Sequence record: PP355766.1
Reading direction: 5' to 3' (one strand)
Length of the DNA: 64,000 bases
Part shown: positions 21,808 through 63,428 of the stretch, in pieces
Numbering within the stretch: the stretch's first letter is position 1
Layout: each line of letters opens with the position of its first letter
Translations under genes and position numbers: made by a program
The notes under the pieces: generated by a model
Databases searched by the model: none
Told to the model about the DNA's origin: nothing
The model's input: only the letters and a program-made list of their open reading frames with translations

Positions 21808-23485
21808 GGACACAGGAGCTACTGGACCACAGGGTCCACAGGGTCCAAATGGTGCTAGCGCCAAAGCCTTTGCCCTAACATCCGATAGCCTGTCCTTTAG
21901 CTTCGATACTAGTGGTAACCTGAAATCTAATGGTACTATCAAGATCGATAGCTGGAGACAGAATACCACTGCTGCAATAACCTGGACTGCCAAGAACCAA
22001 GCAGGGAGTACTATAACTTTAGGTGGCACTGCTACTAACAAGACTATAACCTCTGCTCAGTTCGGAAGCTCAGAGTACGTAACAGTAACCGCGACGTGTG
22101 ATGGAATAACCGATTCCATTACAATAGTTAGGCTGCAAGACGGGGTGAACTCTCTAGTCGGGTACTTAACTAACGAAGCGGCTAACCTGTCGTGTAACTC
22201 CTACGGTTTTGTGCAGAATTGGGATGGCACCACGGGTAACTTCAAGGTGTTCTACGGAACAGTAGATGTTACCAGTCAGTGTACCTTCGGAGTGGAAGAT
22301 AAGAGCAATCTTAACGGCAACATAGGGTCAAGCGGTTATTATGCCCCTAGCGCTATGCCAAACGGGTTGGAAATTACCTCTGGGTGGGTAGATTATAAGG
22401 CTACACATCCTAAGTATGGAACACTTATTAAGAGGTTTACACTCAAGAAGAGCCTGCCCGGGATTGGTTACGACAGGGTGTTCACGGGATCCTTTGACTC
22501 TGGTAACAATGGATCGTGGGGTCGTACGGTGGTTGACATAGCTACAGGTAGTCCCGGGGGACACACTAAGGCTATACAGTGCACCTCTAGGGACACCATG
22601 GAAAGCAGTAACTGGTTCCCTACTCGCAAGGGGATGCGCTACCGTGTAACTGCATGGGTTAACAACTCCGAGGGTGAGTATCAGCTGAGATTAGGCCTCC
22701 ATACCCAGAACTCTGCTGGTAGCGTTAACACTGGTTACCCAACTATGCTAGCCGCATCAGCTAAGGATTCCGGGGGATGGAAACTAGTAACAGGTATTGT
22801 TGAGGTGGGTGACGGAAGCACCGCTGAGACAGGTAGAGCAAGACCGTTTATACAAATGAATGGTAGTGCTAGTCCTTTCGGCAACGCTTACGTGGCTGCT
22901 ATAGCGATCGAAGATCTGTCTATGGACGGTGAGGATGGTGCTACAGGTCCACAAGGTCCACAAGGGAATACTGGTGCTACTGGTCCTACTGGTCCACAGG
23001 GTAGTAAAGGAGATACAGGCCCACAAGGCCCACAAGGGAACAAAGGGGATAAAGGGGACACCGGTCCTCAAGGACCGGCAGGAAGCAGTGGTGCTAAAGG
23101 AGAGCGTGGTCCTGGGTTCTATACTCAGGCTATTACAAACTTAACCGGGTGGAACGATACTCAGGCAGCATCTTTCTTCCAGTCAACATTCGGTGGACCT
23201 CCGGTTAAGTATGACGTACTAACTCAGTATAAGTCGGGCTCTCCACAGAACTCCTGGACTCGTCAATGGAATGGCACAGCATGGACTGCTCCCGCATTAA
23301 CTGTTCACGGTGATATGATCGTTTCCGGTTCTATTACTGCTGATAAGATTATTGCAAGCAACGCGTTCCTGGCACAGATTGGTGTTGACATCCTTTACAA
23401 TAGGGCTGCCGCACTGAGTTCTAACCCGGAAGGTACGTACACCATGAAAATAGACCTGGCTAACGGGTACATTCATATAAGGTAA
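21808..23485 (+). CDS. pb4: T5-like straight central fibre, 5' truncated
   Basis: Collagen repeats, lies directly upstream of p132, ends [15 protein letters not shown]. Confidence 0.72.
22928..23116 (+). repeat. Collagen-like Gly-X-Y repeat
   Basis: [19 protein letters not shown]...; a shorter copy at about 21815-21856. Confidence 0.9.
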
Positions 23486-23488
23486 CAA

Positions 23489-23908
23489 ATGAGCACGGAA
23501 AACAGAGTAGTTGATATTATCCTTGATCAAAACGTGTCGTATGGATTGATGCTACAGTTCATGGATATCGATGACTCTGCGTACCCAGCAACGGAAACCC
23601 CTGTCAATCTGACAGGGGTAACCCTTAAGTCTTCAATTAAAGACTCACTGGAATCCACTGGGGTAAAATTAGCAGATTTCGTCGTAACAGTAATAAACGC
23701 CACACAAGGTCAGGCGTCGCTAGGATTGACAGCGGCTACTGTGGCAACAATCGTTAGCAAAGCAAGTAAAGAACGAGATAAATATAATCCTAGACTTCGG
23801 TTCGCAGGTTACTACGATGTAATCATGACCAGAGGAACAGGAGCTACCGCTACCTCTTATAGAGTAATGGAAGGGAGCGTGTACGTCAGTGACGGAGTAA
23901 CCGCGTAA
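23489..23908 (+). CDS. p132: T5-like tail collar protein
   Basis: MSTENRVVD...KASKERDKYNPR...MEGSVYVSDGVT. Confidence 0.9.
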   Translation: MSTENRVVDIILDQNVSYGLMLQFMDIDDSAYPATETPVNLTGVTLKSSIKDSLESTGVKLADFVVTVINATQGQASLGLTAATVATIVSKASKERDKYNPRLRFAGYYDVIMTRGTGATATSYRVMEGSVYVSDGVTA

Positions 23909-24408
23909 TGGCTATTACAACAAGAATTATTGCACAACAGGTTACCGCCCTTGACGGAGCTAACTCAAGGGTAAGTAAATACCCAAAATTTACCGTACAG
24001 CTAGGCTACTCAGTTAGTTCTCTGGCTGCTACAGAATTACTGGATGCTGCCACTAAATCGGCAGCATCCGCTGCTGCCGCTAAAACTTCGGAAACTAACG
24101 CTAAGGCTTCTGAAACAGCTAGTAAAAATTCCCAGACAGCAGCTAAGACTTCAGAAACTAATGCGGCAGCATCCGCCCAAGTAGCCCAGAATTTGGCAGG
24201 TAAAACATCCCTGGTAACACCTCTAGGAGTTATGACTGGCTCCGCAGAAGCTAAGATTGCATCTATAACAATAGCCGCAAATCAGTCTTCCAGCGTTCAC
24301 GTACTGTTTGCACTCTACGCTACGGGTAACGGAGCTAATAGGGACGATATATACAATATGGAGATAGTATCCCTGGCATTACCTGGTCCTGTAACCTCTG
24401 TAACTATA
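23908..24408 (+). CDS. ltf: T5-like L-shaped tail fibre, N-terminal fragment
   Basis: MAITT...SKYPK..., AAKTSETNA repeats. Confidence 0.82.
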
Positions 24409-24423
24409 CGATGGATGCAAATT

Positions 24424-24498
24424 TGGCAGGCCCTGAAGGAATCGAACCCTCATCACTGGGTTTGGAGCCCAGCATAATAGCCGTTATACTAAGAACCT
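24424..24498 (-). tRNA. tRNA-Trp(CCA)
   Basis: Cloverleaf, loop CT-CCA-AA, GGTTCGATT, CCA end. Confidence 0.9.
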
Positions 24499-24504
24499 GT
24501 TATT

Positions 24505-24580
24505 TGGTGGGAGTAACTGGACTCGAACCAGTCACCGCTCGATTATCGGTCGAGAGCTCTACCAAATGAGCTATACTCCC
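24505..24580 (-). tRNA. tRNA-Ile(GAT)
   Basis: Cloverleaf, loop CC-GAT-AA, CCA end. Confidence 0.88.
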
Positions 24581-24642
24581 ATGGAAAGCTAATCATCTAA
24601 TTGTTGATGTACCACTGCTATGGGCAGCGTTTAACTTTCATA
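24581..24642 (-). ncRNA. Small structured inter-tRNA RNA
   Basis: GAAAGTTAA/TTAGCTTTC closing stem, two internal hairpins. Confidence 0.45.
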
Positions 24643-24646
24643 AATT

Positions 24647-24731
24647 TGGCGGAGAGTAAAGGAGTTGAACCCTCACCGTTTCCGATGGCCCGGATTTCAA
24701 GTCCGGTTTGCTACCACTAGCGCTACTCTCC
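24647..24731 (-). tRNA. tRNA-Ser(TGA)
   Basis: Long variable arm, loop CT-TGA-AA, CCA end. Confidence 0.92.
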
Positions 24732-24737
24732 AATATT

Positions 24738-24822
24738 TGGTGAAGGAAGTGCCATATAGACACAATTCGCTTAGCGACAACCCAGCATGACTGTGGGTCG
24801 TGTATTTTTCCACCATTCCTTC
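24738..24822 (-). ncRNA. Atypical tRNA-like RNA with CCA end
   Basis: GAAGGAA/TTCCTTC acceptor stem + A + CCA; four arms; non-canonical T loop; 9-nt anticodon-position loop centred on TCA. Confidence 0.65.
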
Positions 24823-24827
24823 ATTGT

Positions 24828-24903
24828 TGGGGTGACCGATGGGAGTTGAACCCATGACTACGAGAATCACAATCTCGAGTTCTACCAACTGAACTACGGC
24901 CAC
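24828..24903 (-). tRNA. tRNA-His(GTG)
   Basis: Loop TT-GTG-AT, C73, CCA end. Confidence 0.92.
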
Positions 24904-24906
24904 ATC

Positions 24907-24995
24907 AATATTCACTCCATCCATCATGAGGACTTCATACGAAATTAAGAGAAGAATGATCAGTTCAACCCCTGTAGACGCGTTGAATGAATATT
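24907..24995 (-). ncRNA. Structured inter-tRNA RNA
   Basis: AATATTCATTC/GAGTGAATATT closing stem with G-U on minus strand. Confidence 0.55.
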
Positions 24996-24999
24996 AATT

Positions 25000-25074
25000 T
25001 GGCTGGACTATCTGGATTCGAACCAGAGATACCGGAGTCAAAGGCCGGTGACTTAACCGCTTGTCTATAGTCCA
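25000..25074 (-). tRNA. tRNA-Gln(TTG)
   Basis: Loop CT-TTG-AC, CCA end. Confidence 0.92.
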
Positions 25075-25080
25075 ATTATT

Positions 25081-25157
25081 TGGAGGCGGAGGCAGGACTC
25101 GAACCTGCGCGTGTCGGGATATGAGCCCAACATTCTACCAACTGAAGTTACCCCGCA
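25081..25157 (-). tRNA. Initiator-type tRNA-fMet(CAT)
   Basis: 1:72 mismatch (T:C), GGG/CCC in anticodon stem, loop CT-CAT-AT. Confidence 0.88.
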
Positions 25158-25166
25158 TTTATCCGG

Positions 25167-25303
25167 GTTCTTGAAGTACTAACAAGTAGCTTGATGTAGA
25201 ACACGCTAAAGATATAATCTTACGAATATAGAGCTTATTCCGTGGGAACAAACCGCTTCGTCCTCGGCATTATCTTACAGGACTCAAACTCATCTTCAAG
25301 AAC
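25167..25303 (-). ncRNA. Structured inter-tRNA RNA (about 137 nt)
   Basis: Perfect GTTCTTGAAG/CTTCAAGAAC closing stem, four internal hairpins. Confidence 0.6.
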
Positions 25304-25318
25304 TGCCACGTTCTTATT

Positions 25319-25395
25319 TGGCGGACCTAGCGAGGATCGAACTCGCGCTCTCTCCCGTGACAGGGGAGTATTTTATCCAACTAAACTATAGGTCC
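25319..25395 (-). tRNA. tRNA-Asp(GTC)
   Basis: Loop CT-GTC-AC, CCA end. Confidence 0.93.
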
Positions 25396-25399
25396 ATAA

Positions 25400-25518
25400 T
25401 TCGCTTTCAGAGATACTCTGGCACGATGCCGAAGCAAAGGGGAACAGGACTCTCATCACCTTGGTACCAGATGAATCTTGTTTAGCACTCTGTTCTAAGA
25501 TGTATCCCTGAAAGCGAA
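25400..25518 (-). ncRNA. Structured, possibly pseudoknotted RNA (119 nt)
   Basis: 17-bp closing stem with one G-U on minus strand, C(UUCG)G tetraloop. Confidence 0.68.
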
Positions 25519-25648
25519 CTTTCAACGCCGTAAGAAATTATAACATGAACAAGCATTAAGCAGGATGAAATCATACTCCTTAATACAAACGCCATGCCAG
25601 GGAATTCTATGCCGACGATTTATCAGAACGTCTTCTGACTTCTTCATT

Positions 25649-25733
25649 TGGCGGGCCGTGCAGGTATCGAACCTGCCTAGTCATTTCTGACACGGATTAA
25701 CAGTCCGTCGCTTACCCTCTCAGCCAACGACCC
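25649..25733 (-). tRNA. tRNA-Asn(GTT) with long variable arm
   Basis: Loop CT-GTT-AA; GTCA-GAAA-TGAC extra arm; CCA end. Confidence 0.88.
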
Positions 25734-25738
25734 GAATT

Positions 25739-25815
25739 TGGTGGGACACCGAAGACTCGAACTTCGGACACCCGGATTAAAAGTCCGGTGCTCTAACCAA
25801 CTGAGCTAGTATCCC
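25739..25815 (-). tRNA. tRNA-Lys(TTT)
   Basis: Loop CT-TTT-AA, CCA end. Confidence 0.94.
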
Positions 25816-25821
25816 TAAATT

Positions 25822-25908
25822 TGGTGGGGAGTAATGGAGTCGAACCACTCGAGCCTTTTGAGCAACAGATTTACAGTCTGTCCCGCTACCCCTACGGTCT
25901 AACTCCCC
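25822..25908 (-). tRNA. tRNA-Tyr(GTA)
   Basis: Loop CT-GTA-AA, long variable arm, CCA end. Confidence 0.94.
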
Positions 25909-25920
25909 AGTGGGTAATTT

Positions 25921-25928
25921 TATTTATA
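25921..25928 (-). promoter_or_regulatory. Late promoter upstream of tRNA cluster
   Basis: TATAAATA 12 nt before tRNA-Tyr. Confidence 0.75.
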
Positions 25929-25990
25929 CTGCCCTAAAATTAATCAGAGCAGTTGATAGATTAATAATAACAAAGAAAACCTAAAGCATA

Positions 25991-26341
25991 TTACACAATC
26001 GGTGAGCTCTTTGATTTAACCAGGAATACCCGATGTGGTGAATCCATATGAGAGAGCAATACCCGGTGCTCAGGAATTGGACTTGTATGGAAAGGAACCA
26101 CACGATAACCTTTAGGAGTAAATCCTAGCAAAATACCAACGCTTGCTGCAGAAAGTGACCCACCACAGTAGTATGATACTAAATCACCAGGCTGGATTTC
26201 ATTGTCAAGAGAATCGGTTTTGGTATGCTTAGGCGTAACTAAATCACTAGGAATTGGAACGCCTTGCGCATCATGGTATTCATGGGCAAGAAGCTTATAA
26301 TTCTCTTGATAGAAAGTATTAAATGCAGCTCTGATATTCAT
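25991..26341 (-). CDS. Hypothetical protein of the tRNA region
   Basis: MNIRAAFNTF start with GAGGA SD. Confidence 0.65.
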   Translation of the reverse strand: MNIRAAFNTFYQENYKLLAHEYHDAQGVPIPSDLVTPKHTKTDSLDNEIQPGDLVSYYCGGSLSAASVGILLGFTPKGYRVVPFHTSPIPEHRVLLSHMDSPHRVFLVKSKSSPIV

Positions 26342-26357
26342 CACAATTTCCTCACAA

Positions 26358-26543
26358 TTAATCTTTGTATGCTTCAGTTGAACCTTTAGCAACAGTCTCA
26401 AATCGGGAATTCAGTATCTCAAAATAGTCTTGATACGTTCCCTGGAGGGCTTCATAGCATTCTTCTACCGTAGTGTAGACACCTCTGATTTGGTCAGAGC
26501 CAGGAGCAGGATAATAATTAGACCAAGTTAAAAGTGCATACAT
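26358..26543 (-). CDS. Hypothetical protein
   Basis: 61 aa ORF translationally coupled to upstream ORF. Confidence 0.6.
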   Translation of the reverse strand: MYALLTWSNYYPAPGSDQIRGVYTTVEECYEALQGTYQDYFEILNSRFETVAKGSTEAYKD

Positions 26544-26722
26544 TACTTACGTTTCCAGCTGTAGTGAGCCAAAATAAGAAGCACTGCAATAGCAAGTAGT
26601 GATGAATGCAGTGCTGCCAGTAGTGCACCTAGTCCTACACCCAACGTAACATAATCATACTTAGTTACTTCTTCACGGTTTAAATCATAGTTTTTGATGA
26701 ACCACTGCTTAATCTTTTTCAT
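26543..26722 (-). CDS. Small membrane protein (59 aa, not in ORF track)
   Basis: MKKIKQWFIKNY...TLGVGLGALLAALHSSLLAIAVLLIL. Confidence 0.65.
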   Translation of the reverse strand: MKKIKQWFIKNYDLNREEVTKYDYVTLGVGLGALLAALHSSLLAIAVLLILAHYSWKRK

Positions 26723-26888
26723 GCGCTATTTTATCCATTATGAAAGAAATGATACCCATTAGAAATGCAACACTTAACACTGATACTGTTTCAGGAAGAG
26801 ACATAAAGGCTGCACCTATAATGCCAAAACCTAACGCTCCCATGCAGATGGTTGATGCAACATTTCTAATTAATTCACAACGTTTCAT
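26709..26888 (-). CDS. T4 tRNA.4-like membrane protein (59 aa, not in ORF track)
   Basis: MKRCELIRNVA start as in T4 tRNA.4; two hydrophobic segments. Confidence 0.7.
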   Translation of the reverse strand: MKRCELIRNVASTICMGALGFGIIGAAFMSLPETVSVLSVAFLMGIISFIMDKIAHEKD

Positions 26889-26909
26889 TTTATTCTCCTC
26901 AAGTTGATA

Positions 26910-26944
26910 GGGTTATAGTATCACTACTACAACCCGTTGTAAAC
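26910..26944 (-). promoter_or_regulatory. T4-type early promoter with hairpin over -10
   Basis: GTTTAC-AAC-GGGTTGTAGTA-GTGA-TACTATAACCC. Confidence 0.8.
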
Positions 26945-26980
26945 AACTTTATTATCTTATCAACTACTGAGGAGAATAAC

Positions 26981-47541: not shown

Positions 47542-47549
47542 TCAAATTA

Positions 47550-47626
47550 CTCCGTATAGCTCAGTCTGGTAGAGCGCTCCATTTGGGATGGAGAGGTCGA
47601 ATGTTCGAGTCATTCTATGGAGACCA
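47550..47626 (+). tRNA. tRNA-Pro(TGG)
   Basis: Loop TT-TGG-GA, CCA end. Confidence 0.92.
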
Positions 47627-47632
47627 AATTAA

Positions 47633-47776
47633 CGGTATGACACAATACAAGATGGTGTAAGCTGAGTAGCGGGATTGCAGTCTCGTTCAGATATGCTATC
47701 GAGTATGGGTGATATATTAAACACATGGATTCTGCAAAGTCAATGTGACTCGGTTCGAGGCCGGGCATACCGTCCA
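47633..47776 (+). ncRNA. 144 nt tRNA-like RNA with inserted domain (size and ends like T4 species 1 RNA)
   Basis: CGGTATG/CATACCG + T + CCA; T arm CTCGG-TTCGAGG-CCGGG; multibranched interior. Confidence 0.75.
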
Positions 47777-47801
47777 ATCACTTGCCATTGAGAATTATAT
47801 T

Positions 47802-47954
47802 ATGAAATATTACGGCTTCAAAACATCCCATTTCGGGAAAGCATATCGTACAGAAAACATTGATAGACGTCGAGCATATTACGAATCACTGCATAAAGCA
47901 GGACGTTCTCGTGCACGACAAGAAGGCCAAAAACAAGCGAAGGAAATAGAATGA
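47802..47954 (+). CDS. Small basic hypothetical protein
   Basis: MKYYGFKTSHFG. Confidence 0.55.
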   Translation: MKYYGFKTSHFGKAYRTENIDRRRAYYESLHKAGRSRARQEGQKQAKEIE

Positions 47955-48319
47955 ATATTTTTATTGGTGTATCAAATGACGTAAATGCTATTACGGTGAA
48001 GCTGTCTTTGGATGGACCGGTTAATTTAGCATTAGGGCTTTCATCTTGTGCTAAACGGGATTTAATGATTAACGCTGACTTTGCATATGCATTTGATGAA
48101 CGCAAAGGTATGTGGGTTTGGATTAAATATCGATACGACACATTACTCAAATATGAGTACTTTAGTGAACGTGATATTCAAGAAATTATTGCTTATCACT
48201 CTGGGTGTAAAATTAATAAACTGCGGCAAGTTACTCCGTTAACCGCTGATACTAATGTAGAGCAACTTGTATTAGATTTTAAACAAATTTGCCAGGCGAA
48301 ATATGATGAAAGATTCTAA
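47951..48319 (+). CDS. Hypothetical protein
   Basis: 122 aa, coupled ORF. Confidence 0.65.
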   Translation: MNIFIGVSNDVNAITVKLSLDGPVNLALGLSSCAKRDLMINADFAYAFDERKGMWVWIKYRYDTLLKYEYFSERDIQEIIAYHSGCKINKLRQVTPLTADTNVEQLVLDFKQICQAKYDERF

Positions 48320-48536
48320 AGGTCGAGAAGTACAAGTTGGTGATATCGTTTTCTACGGAGAACGCACATACAATAAAGGTGGTCGCGGTTCTATGAAGTG
48401 TGGCCGTATTACTGATATTGCTTCAGGATTGGCTAAAGTAGATAACGACTACGTTGCAATGCGAAGCAAATCATTCGTTAAGGTTTCTCCTATGTTCGCA
48501 ACAATGTGGGAAAACGGAACGATTTTCGAGATTTAA
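48303..48536 (+). CDS. Small KOW/SH3-like hypothetical protein
   Basis: KDSKGREVQVGDIVFY. Confidence 0.6.
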   Translation: MMKDSKGREVQVGDIVFYGERTYNKGGRGSMKCGRITDIASGLAKVDNDYVAMRSKSFVKVSPMFATMWENGTIFEI

Positions 48537-48590
48537 TGCTACAAGAATAACCTGTTATTATTACTACATCAAAACAAACAAGGAAAAAGA

Positions 48591-48815
48591 ATGAAACGTA
48601 TCGCACTGATTGTTGACCAAGAAGCTATGTTCGCTGCTACCGGTAAATTTCATCCGGTGAGTAAATTTGTTGCTCGCAGCGAGAAAATCGTTGGTCTGGT
48701 AGAAACTGTCGCAGGTGATGTAATTGTTTCTATTAAAACATCTGAAATTTCTCCGGTGGTTAAAGTAGCAGTTAAAAATGACTTCTGGGAAGTAGCTGAT
48801 TTTATGTGTGAGTAA
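48591..48815 (+). CDS. Hypothetical protein
   Basis: AAGGA SD, 74 aa. Confidence 0.65.
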   Translation: MKRIALIVDQEAMFAATGKFHPVSKFVARSEKIVGLVETVAGDVIVSIKTSEISPVVKVAVKNDFWEVADFMCE

Positions 48816-48848
48816 TTCTGCCTAGCAGGTGGATAAGCCCGACAAGGC

Positions 48849-48868
48849 GCCCTCTTCGGAGGGCTTTT
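48849..48868 (+). terminator. Terminator
   Basis: GCCCTC-TTCG-GAGGGC-TTTT. Confidence 0.85.
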
Positions 48869-48893
48869 ATAAAAGTCGTAAGATTTCTATAAA

Positions 48894-48970
48894 GGCCCTG
48901 TAGCTCAATTGGTAGAGCGTTCCCCTCATAAGGGATTGGTTGCATGTTCGAGTCTTTGCCAGGGTCACCA
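48894..48970 (+). tRNA. tRNA with CAT anticodon, probably Ile2 (lysidine type)
   Basis: GGCCCTG acceptor (C4:G69, C5:G68), CCCC-TCATAA-GGGA like T4 tRNA-Ile; irregular T stem. Confidence 0.78.
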
Positions 48971-48974
48971 AATT

Positions 48975-62294: not shown

Positions 62295-62332
62295 TACTTT
62301 TTAATATTTTTCTTCTGGTGTGAAATAAATTT

Positions 62333-63020
<688 letters not shown>

Positions 63021-63024
<4 letters not shown>

Positions 63025-63390
63025 TTTTGAATTCCTAATATAGTGTTGATTTTTGAATAAAGTTCTTCTAGAGAACCGTCGTTAGTTATTACGATATCGC
63101 CTTCGCGAATCGGAAGTCCACGCTCTGTGACGTGAGTATCTTTTTTAGAACCTTCTTGCTCAGGACGAACTACATGAATAACTGTAGCACCCATCGCCCT
63201 GGCTACATCAAGTTCATGGTCTTGGCGGGTATCTGGGACAATGAAATAATCATAATCACCAAAAGTATCAGCCATAACCAAAGTGAATCGTTTCACCCAA
63301 TACATGCGATCGAGCTTATCACAGACAATGTCAGTCCCAAGGGTCTGCATGAGACGACGAATTGACCATGGCTCAACAGGTTTATTTATT
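63021..63390 (-). CDS. gp1: dNMP kinase, C-terminal fragment
   Basis: WSIRRLMQTLGTDIV, VPDTRQDHE, HVTERGL, ITNDGSLEEL. Confidence 0.92.
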
Positions 63391-63428
63391 ACAACTTCAA
63401 GGAATGGCCCCTTTAACTGGAATCTAAA

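Follow-up and report, generated by a model that had tools for sequence, protein, structure and literature searches.

The window analysed here is a stretch of 64,000 nt from sequence record PP355766.1, in which the segment 24404–26950 represents part of a tRNA operon, that of a JD18-type Klebsiella phage (Jiaodavirus, Straboviridae). This segment is 97–99% identical to phage Nispero and carries ten tRNA genes on its minus strand. The 253-nt spacer from tRNA-Asn to tRNA-Asp of this T4-like phage, within which no tRNA cloverleaf was detected by ARAGORN or Rfam RF00005 (25396–25648), contains an unannotated homologue of T4 rnaD followed by a second unannotated RNA module, which we call X. Promoter-like or terminator-like sites were not found near X on the minus strand of the tRNA cluster. 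The features are as follows, in the order of transcription.

25649–25733, minus strand: tRNA-Asn, 5' of the rnaD-like module (ARAGORN, Rfam)
25521–25650, minus strand: homologue of T4 rnaD (species 2 RNA), directly 3' of tRNA-Asn (nhmmer)
25508–25525, minus strand: 5' hairpin P0, UUGAAAG-UUCG-CUUUCAG, which uses the 5' strand of P1 and excludes P1
25398–25520, minus strand: the whole X module, 119 nt and two extra closing pairs per end
25502–25520, minus strand: 5' strand of P1, partner of 25398–25416
25490–25495, minus strand: 5' strand of P2, GAACAG, nested with 25442–25447
25450–25479, minus strand: conserved core, AAGAU, P3 hairpin and UGAGAG
25463–25468, minus strand: palindromic apex of P3, GGUACC (GUGCAC in other lineages), overlapping UGGUAC
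25442–25447, minus strand: 3' strand of P2, CUGUUC, from the comparative structure
25427–25436, minus strand: P4 hairpin, UGC[UUCG]GCA
25419–25424, minus strand: GUGCCA, proposed 3' partner of a second pseudoknot, which is unsupported
25398–25416, minus strand: 3' strand of P1, ending 2 nt short of the first base of tRNA-Asp
25319–25395, minus strand: tRNA-Asp, immediately 3' of X (ARAGORN, Rfam)

The window as a whole is a mosaic when compared with Nispero (positions 24404, 26950, 47543–48974 and 62319–63397), and around X the two are colinear only over 24404–26950. The tRNA cluster continues (Gly, Pro and others) at 47543–48974 on the opposite strand. With the best-matching record being 288,685 bp long, the record looks mis-joined.

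The minus-strand RNA of 25400–25518 (119 nt) folds at -44.5 kcal/mol, compared with -28.1 +/- 3.45 kcal/mol for dinucleotide shuffles (z -4.75), and 0 of 200 shuffles fold as well. The 17-bp closing stem reported in the preliminary description is in place, with 25502–25518 paired to 25400–25416 and one G-U pair included; because an A-U and a G-U pair extend this stem to 25520 and 25398, the closing helix P1 is really 19 bp long, and together with its extension it reaches about 20–22 bp. The whole module, 25398–25520, has a fold z of -4.41. The distance between the end of P1 and tRNA-Asp is 0–2 nt across lineages.

Searches with blastn showed that the spacer is present in other Jiaodavirus phages, where X is essentially invariant, and that diverged forms of X occupy the equivalent position in the Karamvirus group (PG7, Pet-CM3-4, COW86c, CW742 and others, as well as Citrobacter phage Ursula), in CC31 and in Marfavirus (Marfa, EI and HMGUkp2). 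RNAalifold applied to the non-Jiaodavirus sequences yielded a three-way junction in which P1 closes the molecule, one arm leads from P2 through an asymmetric internal loop to the hairpin P3, and the second arm is the hairpin P4 with its tetraloop. A covariance model (R1) built from Karamvirus and Marfavirus homologues only, with the lineage of the window excluded, matches 25400–25519 end to end (29.6 bits, E about 1e-4), and the window is otherwise without a match. Among 13 distinct sequences, 97.4% of the cells in the modelled structure are paired, compared with 32–49% when the partners are slid. Both sides have changed in 20 of the 46 pairs, which was reached by 0 of 500 shuffles, and in 7 of the 15 modelled pairs of P1; the sample covers four sequence lineages only, and fitting the alignment to the model has inflated these pair counts. 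In P3 and P4, G-U pairs would be C-A mismatches on the opposite strand, which places the RNA on the tRNA strand. Fold stability, covariation and G-U pairs together support the earlier proposal of a genuine structured minus-strand RNA in the setting of the T4 small stable RNAs.

The preliminary description had further proposed that two loop-to-distal pairings could form pseudoknots. The first of these, GAACAG (25490–25495) with CUGUUC (25442–25447), is indeed complementary and is kept by compensation in the homologues, but it corresponds to P2, an ordinary nested helix of the comparative structure, which reads GUUAUUG/CAAUAAC in PG7, GUUAAUG/CAUUAAC in Marfa and GACA/UGUC in CC31. When the window sequence is folded by itself, the pairing probability of P2 in the ensemble is only about 0.04, enforcing it costs 1.8 kcal/mol, and a rival pairing of GAACAGAG with CUUUG-UUC is preferred. 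The C(UUCG)G hairpin that had been noted is likewise present and forms P4, the positional homologue of AGCUUU[CCGG]AAAGCU in Marfa and GGUUUU[CCGG]AAAACC in CC31; the minimum free energy (MFE) fold prefers a competing local hairpin, GGCA[UCG]UGCC (25420–25430), over P4. For the window sequence the full comparative model has an energy of -40.3 kcal/mol versus -46.5 kcal/mol for the MFE fold. As thermodynamics would pair GAACAG differently and put a different hairpin in place of P4, the 3' domain is less certain in Jiaodavirus than the rest of the structure.

The second pairing, UGGUAC (25464–25469) with GUGCCA (25419–25424), is complementary in the window sequence as well; as a pseudoknot, however, it is a chance-level match that has no counterpart in homologues. 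When the 3' segment was shuffled 2000 times, a 6-bp match of this type appeared in 342 cases (17%), and the best matches in Karamvirus, CC31 and Marfavirus were of 4–5 nt, again at chance level. In these other lineages the P3 apex is invariant and the 3' junction varies without matching it, and the better reading of UGGUAC places it at the top of P3. Neither of the two complementarities is kept in homologues as the crossing pairing of an H-type pseudoknot.

These results bear directly on the suggestion that X is a ribozyme or a riboswitch-like RNA held in shape by two pseudoknots. In favour of this suggestion, both complementarities are present in the window and the fold is unusually stable; yet one 'pseudoknot' is a plain nested helix, the other is reached by chance in the shuffles and in the short matches of other lineages, and its 5' arm is better explained as the P3 apex. 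A cmscan of 24300–26100 against Rfam 15, at gathering thresholds and at E<=10, gave the tRNAs and chance matches only, the best match on X being to a plant miRNA model, with 24 bits where the threshold is 70. Moreover, the neighbours of X are the RNA D-like module and tRNA-Asp and there is no downstream mRNA to regulate, so a cis-regulatory role is unsupported: X is not part of the 5' UTR of a regulated mRNA, and the minus strand shows no terminator. Altogether, we regard a ribozyme or riboswitch-like tertiary fold as very improbable.

What stands out in the comparison is the core of the molecule. The flanks of P3, AAGAU and UGAGAG, are invariant in all lineages (alignment A6), and throughout the core the Karamvirus, CC31 and Marfavirus lineages agree at every position (100% identity) despite differing P1, P2 and P4, in which many compensatory changes are found. 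In Jiaodavirus the core flanks are retained while the P3 stem and its apex are replaced. The GA of AAGAU and the GA of UGAGAG flank P3 in the right orientation for a kink-turn, the side of the canonical stem being irregular in some lineages (A6), and tandem G-A pairs between the two flanks, arranged much as in a kink-turn, are conceivable. The apex of P3 is self-complementary in both of its forms, GUGCAC and GGUACC. Further copies of this palindrome were not found in the other RNAs of the cluster.

We also considered that the conserved signal could lie at the DNA or protein level, as a small ORF, a palindromic protein-binding site, or the relic of a mobile-element or homing-endonuclease insertion. 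There is some ground for each of these, given that hypothetical proteins are annotated over X in several GenBank records, that hairpins with palindromic loops are DNA palindromes, that this tRNA cluster is a hot spot of homing endonuclease genes, and that a GAAAG repeat flanks the body of X. No reading frame over X is conserved among the lineages, however, as stops break the frames and indels shift them, and the G-U pairs and compensatory changes act at the RNA level and are strand-specific. The upstream repeat varies in length (5, 7 or 8 nt) and changes in step with the 5' strand of P1, including G-U-compatible changes, which indicates pairing rather than a target-site duplication. An explanation at the DNA or protein level thus deserves very little credence. 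Hypothetical-protein calls extend over the RNA D-like and X modules in Marfa (gp276, L009 675–908), in CW742 (L080 356–514) and in the window (ORF 25373–25525, minus strand); with their frames unconserved between lineages, these calls are probably spurious.

The neighbouring module, 25521–25650, shows the hallmarks of rnaD: a hairpin directly after the tRNA, a UAAGUCGUCGG-type box, UUCCCUG and a closing ACGGCG. An nhmmer profile of this module, built without T4, recovers the window copy (25650–25521, E 4.5e-18) and matches T4 rnaD exactly (L007 2170–2057, E 1.7e-4 in 677 kb, profile positions 8–104 of 108). It also matches the rV5-like Escherichia phage A7_1, which lies outside Straboviridae (L012 784–877, E 1.5e-16), and an Aeromonas phage (L005 1499–1590). 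The range of the family further includes Karamvirus, Marfavirus (with a 5' insertion) and Moonvirus KM16, and a scan of IMG/VR with the RNA D box pattern returned 4 loci.

In this light the similarity in size between X and T4 species 2 RNA, pointed out in the preliminary description, can be re-evaluated. The size holds, since T4 rnaD is also 119 nt and both RNAs lie in a tRNA cluster; the homology does not. Models R1 and R2 of X find no match in the T4 locus, nor does R2 in the whole T4 genome, MAFFT gave no convincing alignment of X with T4 rnaD, and the 5' hairpin after the tRNA, the UAAGUCGUCGG box and the closing ACGGCG are not present in X. Because the T4 rnaD homologue is the adjacent upstream module, whose profile matches T4 rnaD, the equal length of 119 nt is coincidental, and it is barely conceivable that X itself is the homologue of species 2 RNA. 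X does not align with T4 rnaC (MAFFT) either and is without its T-arm-like GGUUCGAAUCC segment, and RNAduplex comparisons of X with the neighbouring modules gave whole-length artefacts only.

The distribution of X among related phages is uneven. A pattern scan of IMG/VR with the core motif returned 67 loci, 9 of them true, all within the four known lineages. Model R2 did not detect X in the complete genomes of T4, KM16, Aeromonas phage AS-zj and A7_1, or in the tRNA loci of Serratia phage CBH8, Aeromonas phage phiAS4 and Proteus phage 10. Zero blastn matches were obtained in 5,426 E. coli genomes, indicating that X was not copied from an E. coli RNA. In KM16 (Moonvirus, Salmonella) an RNA D-like module alone lies between tRNA-Asn and tRNA-Asp, and in Marfa X is present while tRNA-Asp is absent; taken together, these two arrangements identify X as a separable module.

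Other parts of the tRNA cluster displayed features of their own. A further structured RNA, likewise conserved, lies in the Asp-Met spacer (25158–25318, minus strand), and its closing stem GUUCUUGAAG/CUUCAAGAAC is compensated in Marfa to GUCUAAAGAG/CUCUUUAGAC; this RNA is found wherever X occurs and is missing in KM16, and an nhmmer profile of the module did not match T4 rnaC. End-to-end closing stems are predicted for the other long spacers of the cluster too, including the two 96-nt inter-tRNA spacers at 24732–24827 and 24904–24999 (minus strand; z -3.4 and -2.1), the former with ACCA after its closing stem, and the long spacers of this operon all look like closed-end RNA modules. Jiaodavirus tRNA-Asp genes fall into three identity classes relative to 25319–25395 of the window (100%, 93.5% and 77.9%) beside a nearly identical flanking X, which suggests a cassette-like exchange of single tRNA genes in the cluster. 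In Salmonella phage KM16, a 350-nt gap after tRNA-Gln (L011 1147–1498) contains a T-arm-like segment (GGGUUCAAGUCCCAC) and may represent an interrupted or intron-containing tRNA or another tRNA-like RNA.

Besides the fold of the full-length molecule, an alternative hairpin was predicted at the 5' end. In each of the four lineages P0 is the structure predicted for the nascent RNA, and P1 is predicted to displace it once the RNA is complete. In Karamvirus and CC31 it reads CCGAAAG/CUUUCGG, a different sequence with the pairing kept, and in Marfavirus it comprises 8 bp, with two A-to-G changes that convert pairs to G-U in Marfavirus-type contigs.

We therefore asked what kind of RNA X might be. 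Three independent studies yielded RNA-library contigs that cover X at 95–100% identity, although such contigs show no ends and may derive from phage DNA; owing to the mosaic record, the planned silent control (22600–24345) lies outside the Nispero-matching block 24404–26950. The comparisons show a conserved fold, a separate module and a position inside the operon. The reading that we favour, and hold to be probable, takes X for a conserved non-coding module in its own right within the polycistronic tRNA operon of Jiaodavirus, Karamvirus and Marfavirus, processed as a stable RNA. As far as the sequence can tell, the tRNA precursor most likely yields X as a third stable RNA. It would be co-transcribed with the tRNAs and excised by the tRNA-processing machinery, its 3' end being set by the RNase P cut at the first base of tRNA-Asp and its 5' end by an RNase E or RNase III cut in the linker GAAAG, which follows the RNA D homologue. 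P0 would hold the 5' strand of P1 while the body is transcribed, and P1 would then displace P0 and expose the linker for cleavage. The fully paired, blunt ends may confer exonuclease resistance, giving a third 'stable RNA species' beside T4-type RNA C and RNA D, and the invariant AAGAU/P3/UGAGAG core would be the functional site, recognised by a putative protein or RNA partner.

The main rival to this reading is that X acts only in cis as a processing spacer, with P1 serving as an RNase III-type stem, like the stems that flank 16S and 23S rRNA, that separates the RNA D-like module from tRNA-Asp, and with the body being a by-product. With its extension P1 comes to about 20–22 bp, it adjoins tRNA-Asp, RNase III participates in the processing of the T4 tRNA cluster, and the P0/P1 switch resembles a folding or processing device. 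The strongest sequence constraint, however, lies in the distal P3 and internal-loop core rather than in P1, Marfavirus retains X without tRNA-Asp, and in KM16 and T4 the same neighbouring RNAs are processed although X is missing. We consequently rate a role as processing spacer only as unlikely, though worth keeping in mind.

The favoured reading of X as a stable RNA module can also be set against known systems. X resembles the RNase III stems of rRNA operons and T7 early RNA in having a long helix formed by the sequences that flank a structured body within a polycistronic stable-RNA transcript, but the helix, 19 bp plus 3 bp, is at the lower limit for RNase III and conservation is strongest distally. 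The bacterial Y RNA-like RNAs (YrlA) are of comparable design, at about 110–130 nt with ends joined in a long stem and a structured distal module, and they too occur in phages; X, in contrast, has no Rfam match at E<=10 and lacks a tRNA-like T or D arm. T4 RNA D and RNA C are likewise small non-coding RNAs that lie among T4-type tRNA genes, on the tRNA strand and without a promoter of their own; their transcripts come from the tRNA region, and no role is established for either (PMC3014915, PMC9697503). X shares no sequence or structural homology with them, being a three-way junction with a closing helix of roughly 20 bp, and is missing from T4, Moonvirus KM16, Winklervirus CBH8 and the Aeromonas phages AS-zj and phiAS4.

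A more speculative possibility concerns the P3 apex. X may act in homodimeric form, or it may provide the RNA core for a phage-specific RNP; the P3 apex would then be a kissing loop and the G-A-flanked loop a protein dock. We find this distinctly doubtful. The kissing-loop reading arises because GUGCAC is turned into GGUACC by two coupled double changes that keep self-complementarity, and pairing inside a single P3 hairpin does not require the apex to be self-complementary. The six-base self-complementary apex recalls, by analogy only, the dimerisation-initiation hairpins of retroviruses, from which it differs in that the palindrome of X can also close intramolecularly with a G-C pair and a tetraloop. 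If the dimer or RNP reading were true, T4-type tRNA operons would encode self-associating RNAs that have a role in infection and are not processing debris, for example in sequestering a host RNA-binding or defence factor.

Literature searches retrieved no description of X, and there is no Rfam family for it; X is a new RNA family among the small RNAs embedded in T4-type tRNA operons. One practical consequence is that the 'hypothetical protein' annotations of this locus in several Klebsiella and Enterobacter phage records are probably spurious, which is relevant to the curation of therapeutic-phage genomes. For the biology of the T4-related phages, the finding means that their tRNA operon encodes, next to the RNA D homologue, at least one further RNA family that is conserved and folds on its own. 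In the fifty years or so since T4 RNA C and RNA D became known, no function has been assigned to them. With its defined architecture, short invariant core and conserved P1-competing fold, X offers a concrete mutable target, and the P3 apex, the G-A loop and the P0/P1 switch are the sites at which the function of operon-embedded RNAs can be addressed by mutation.
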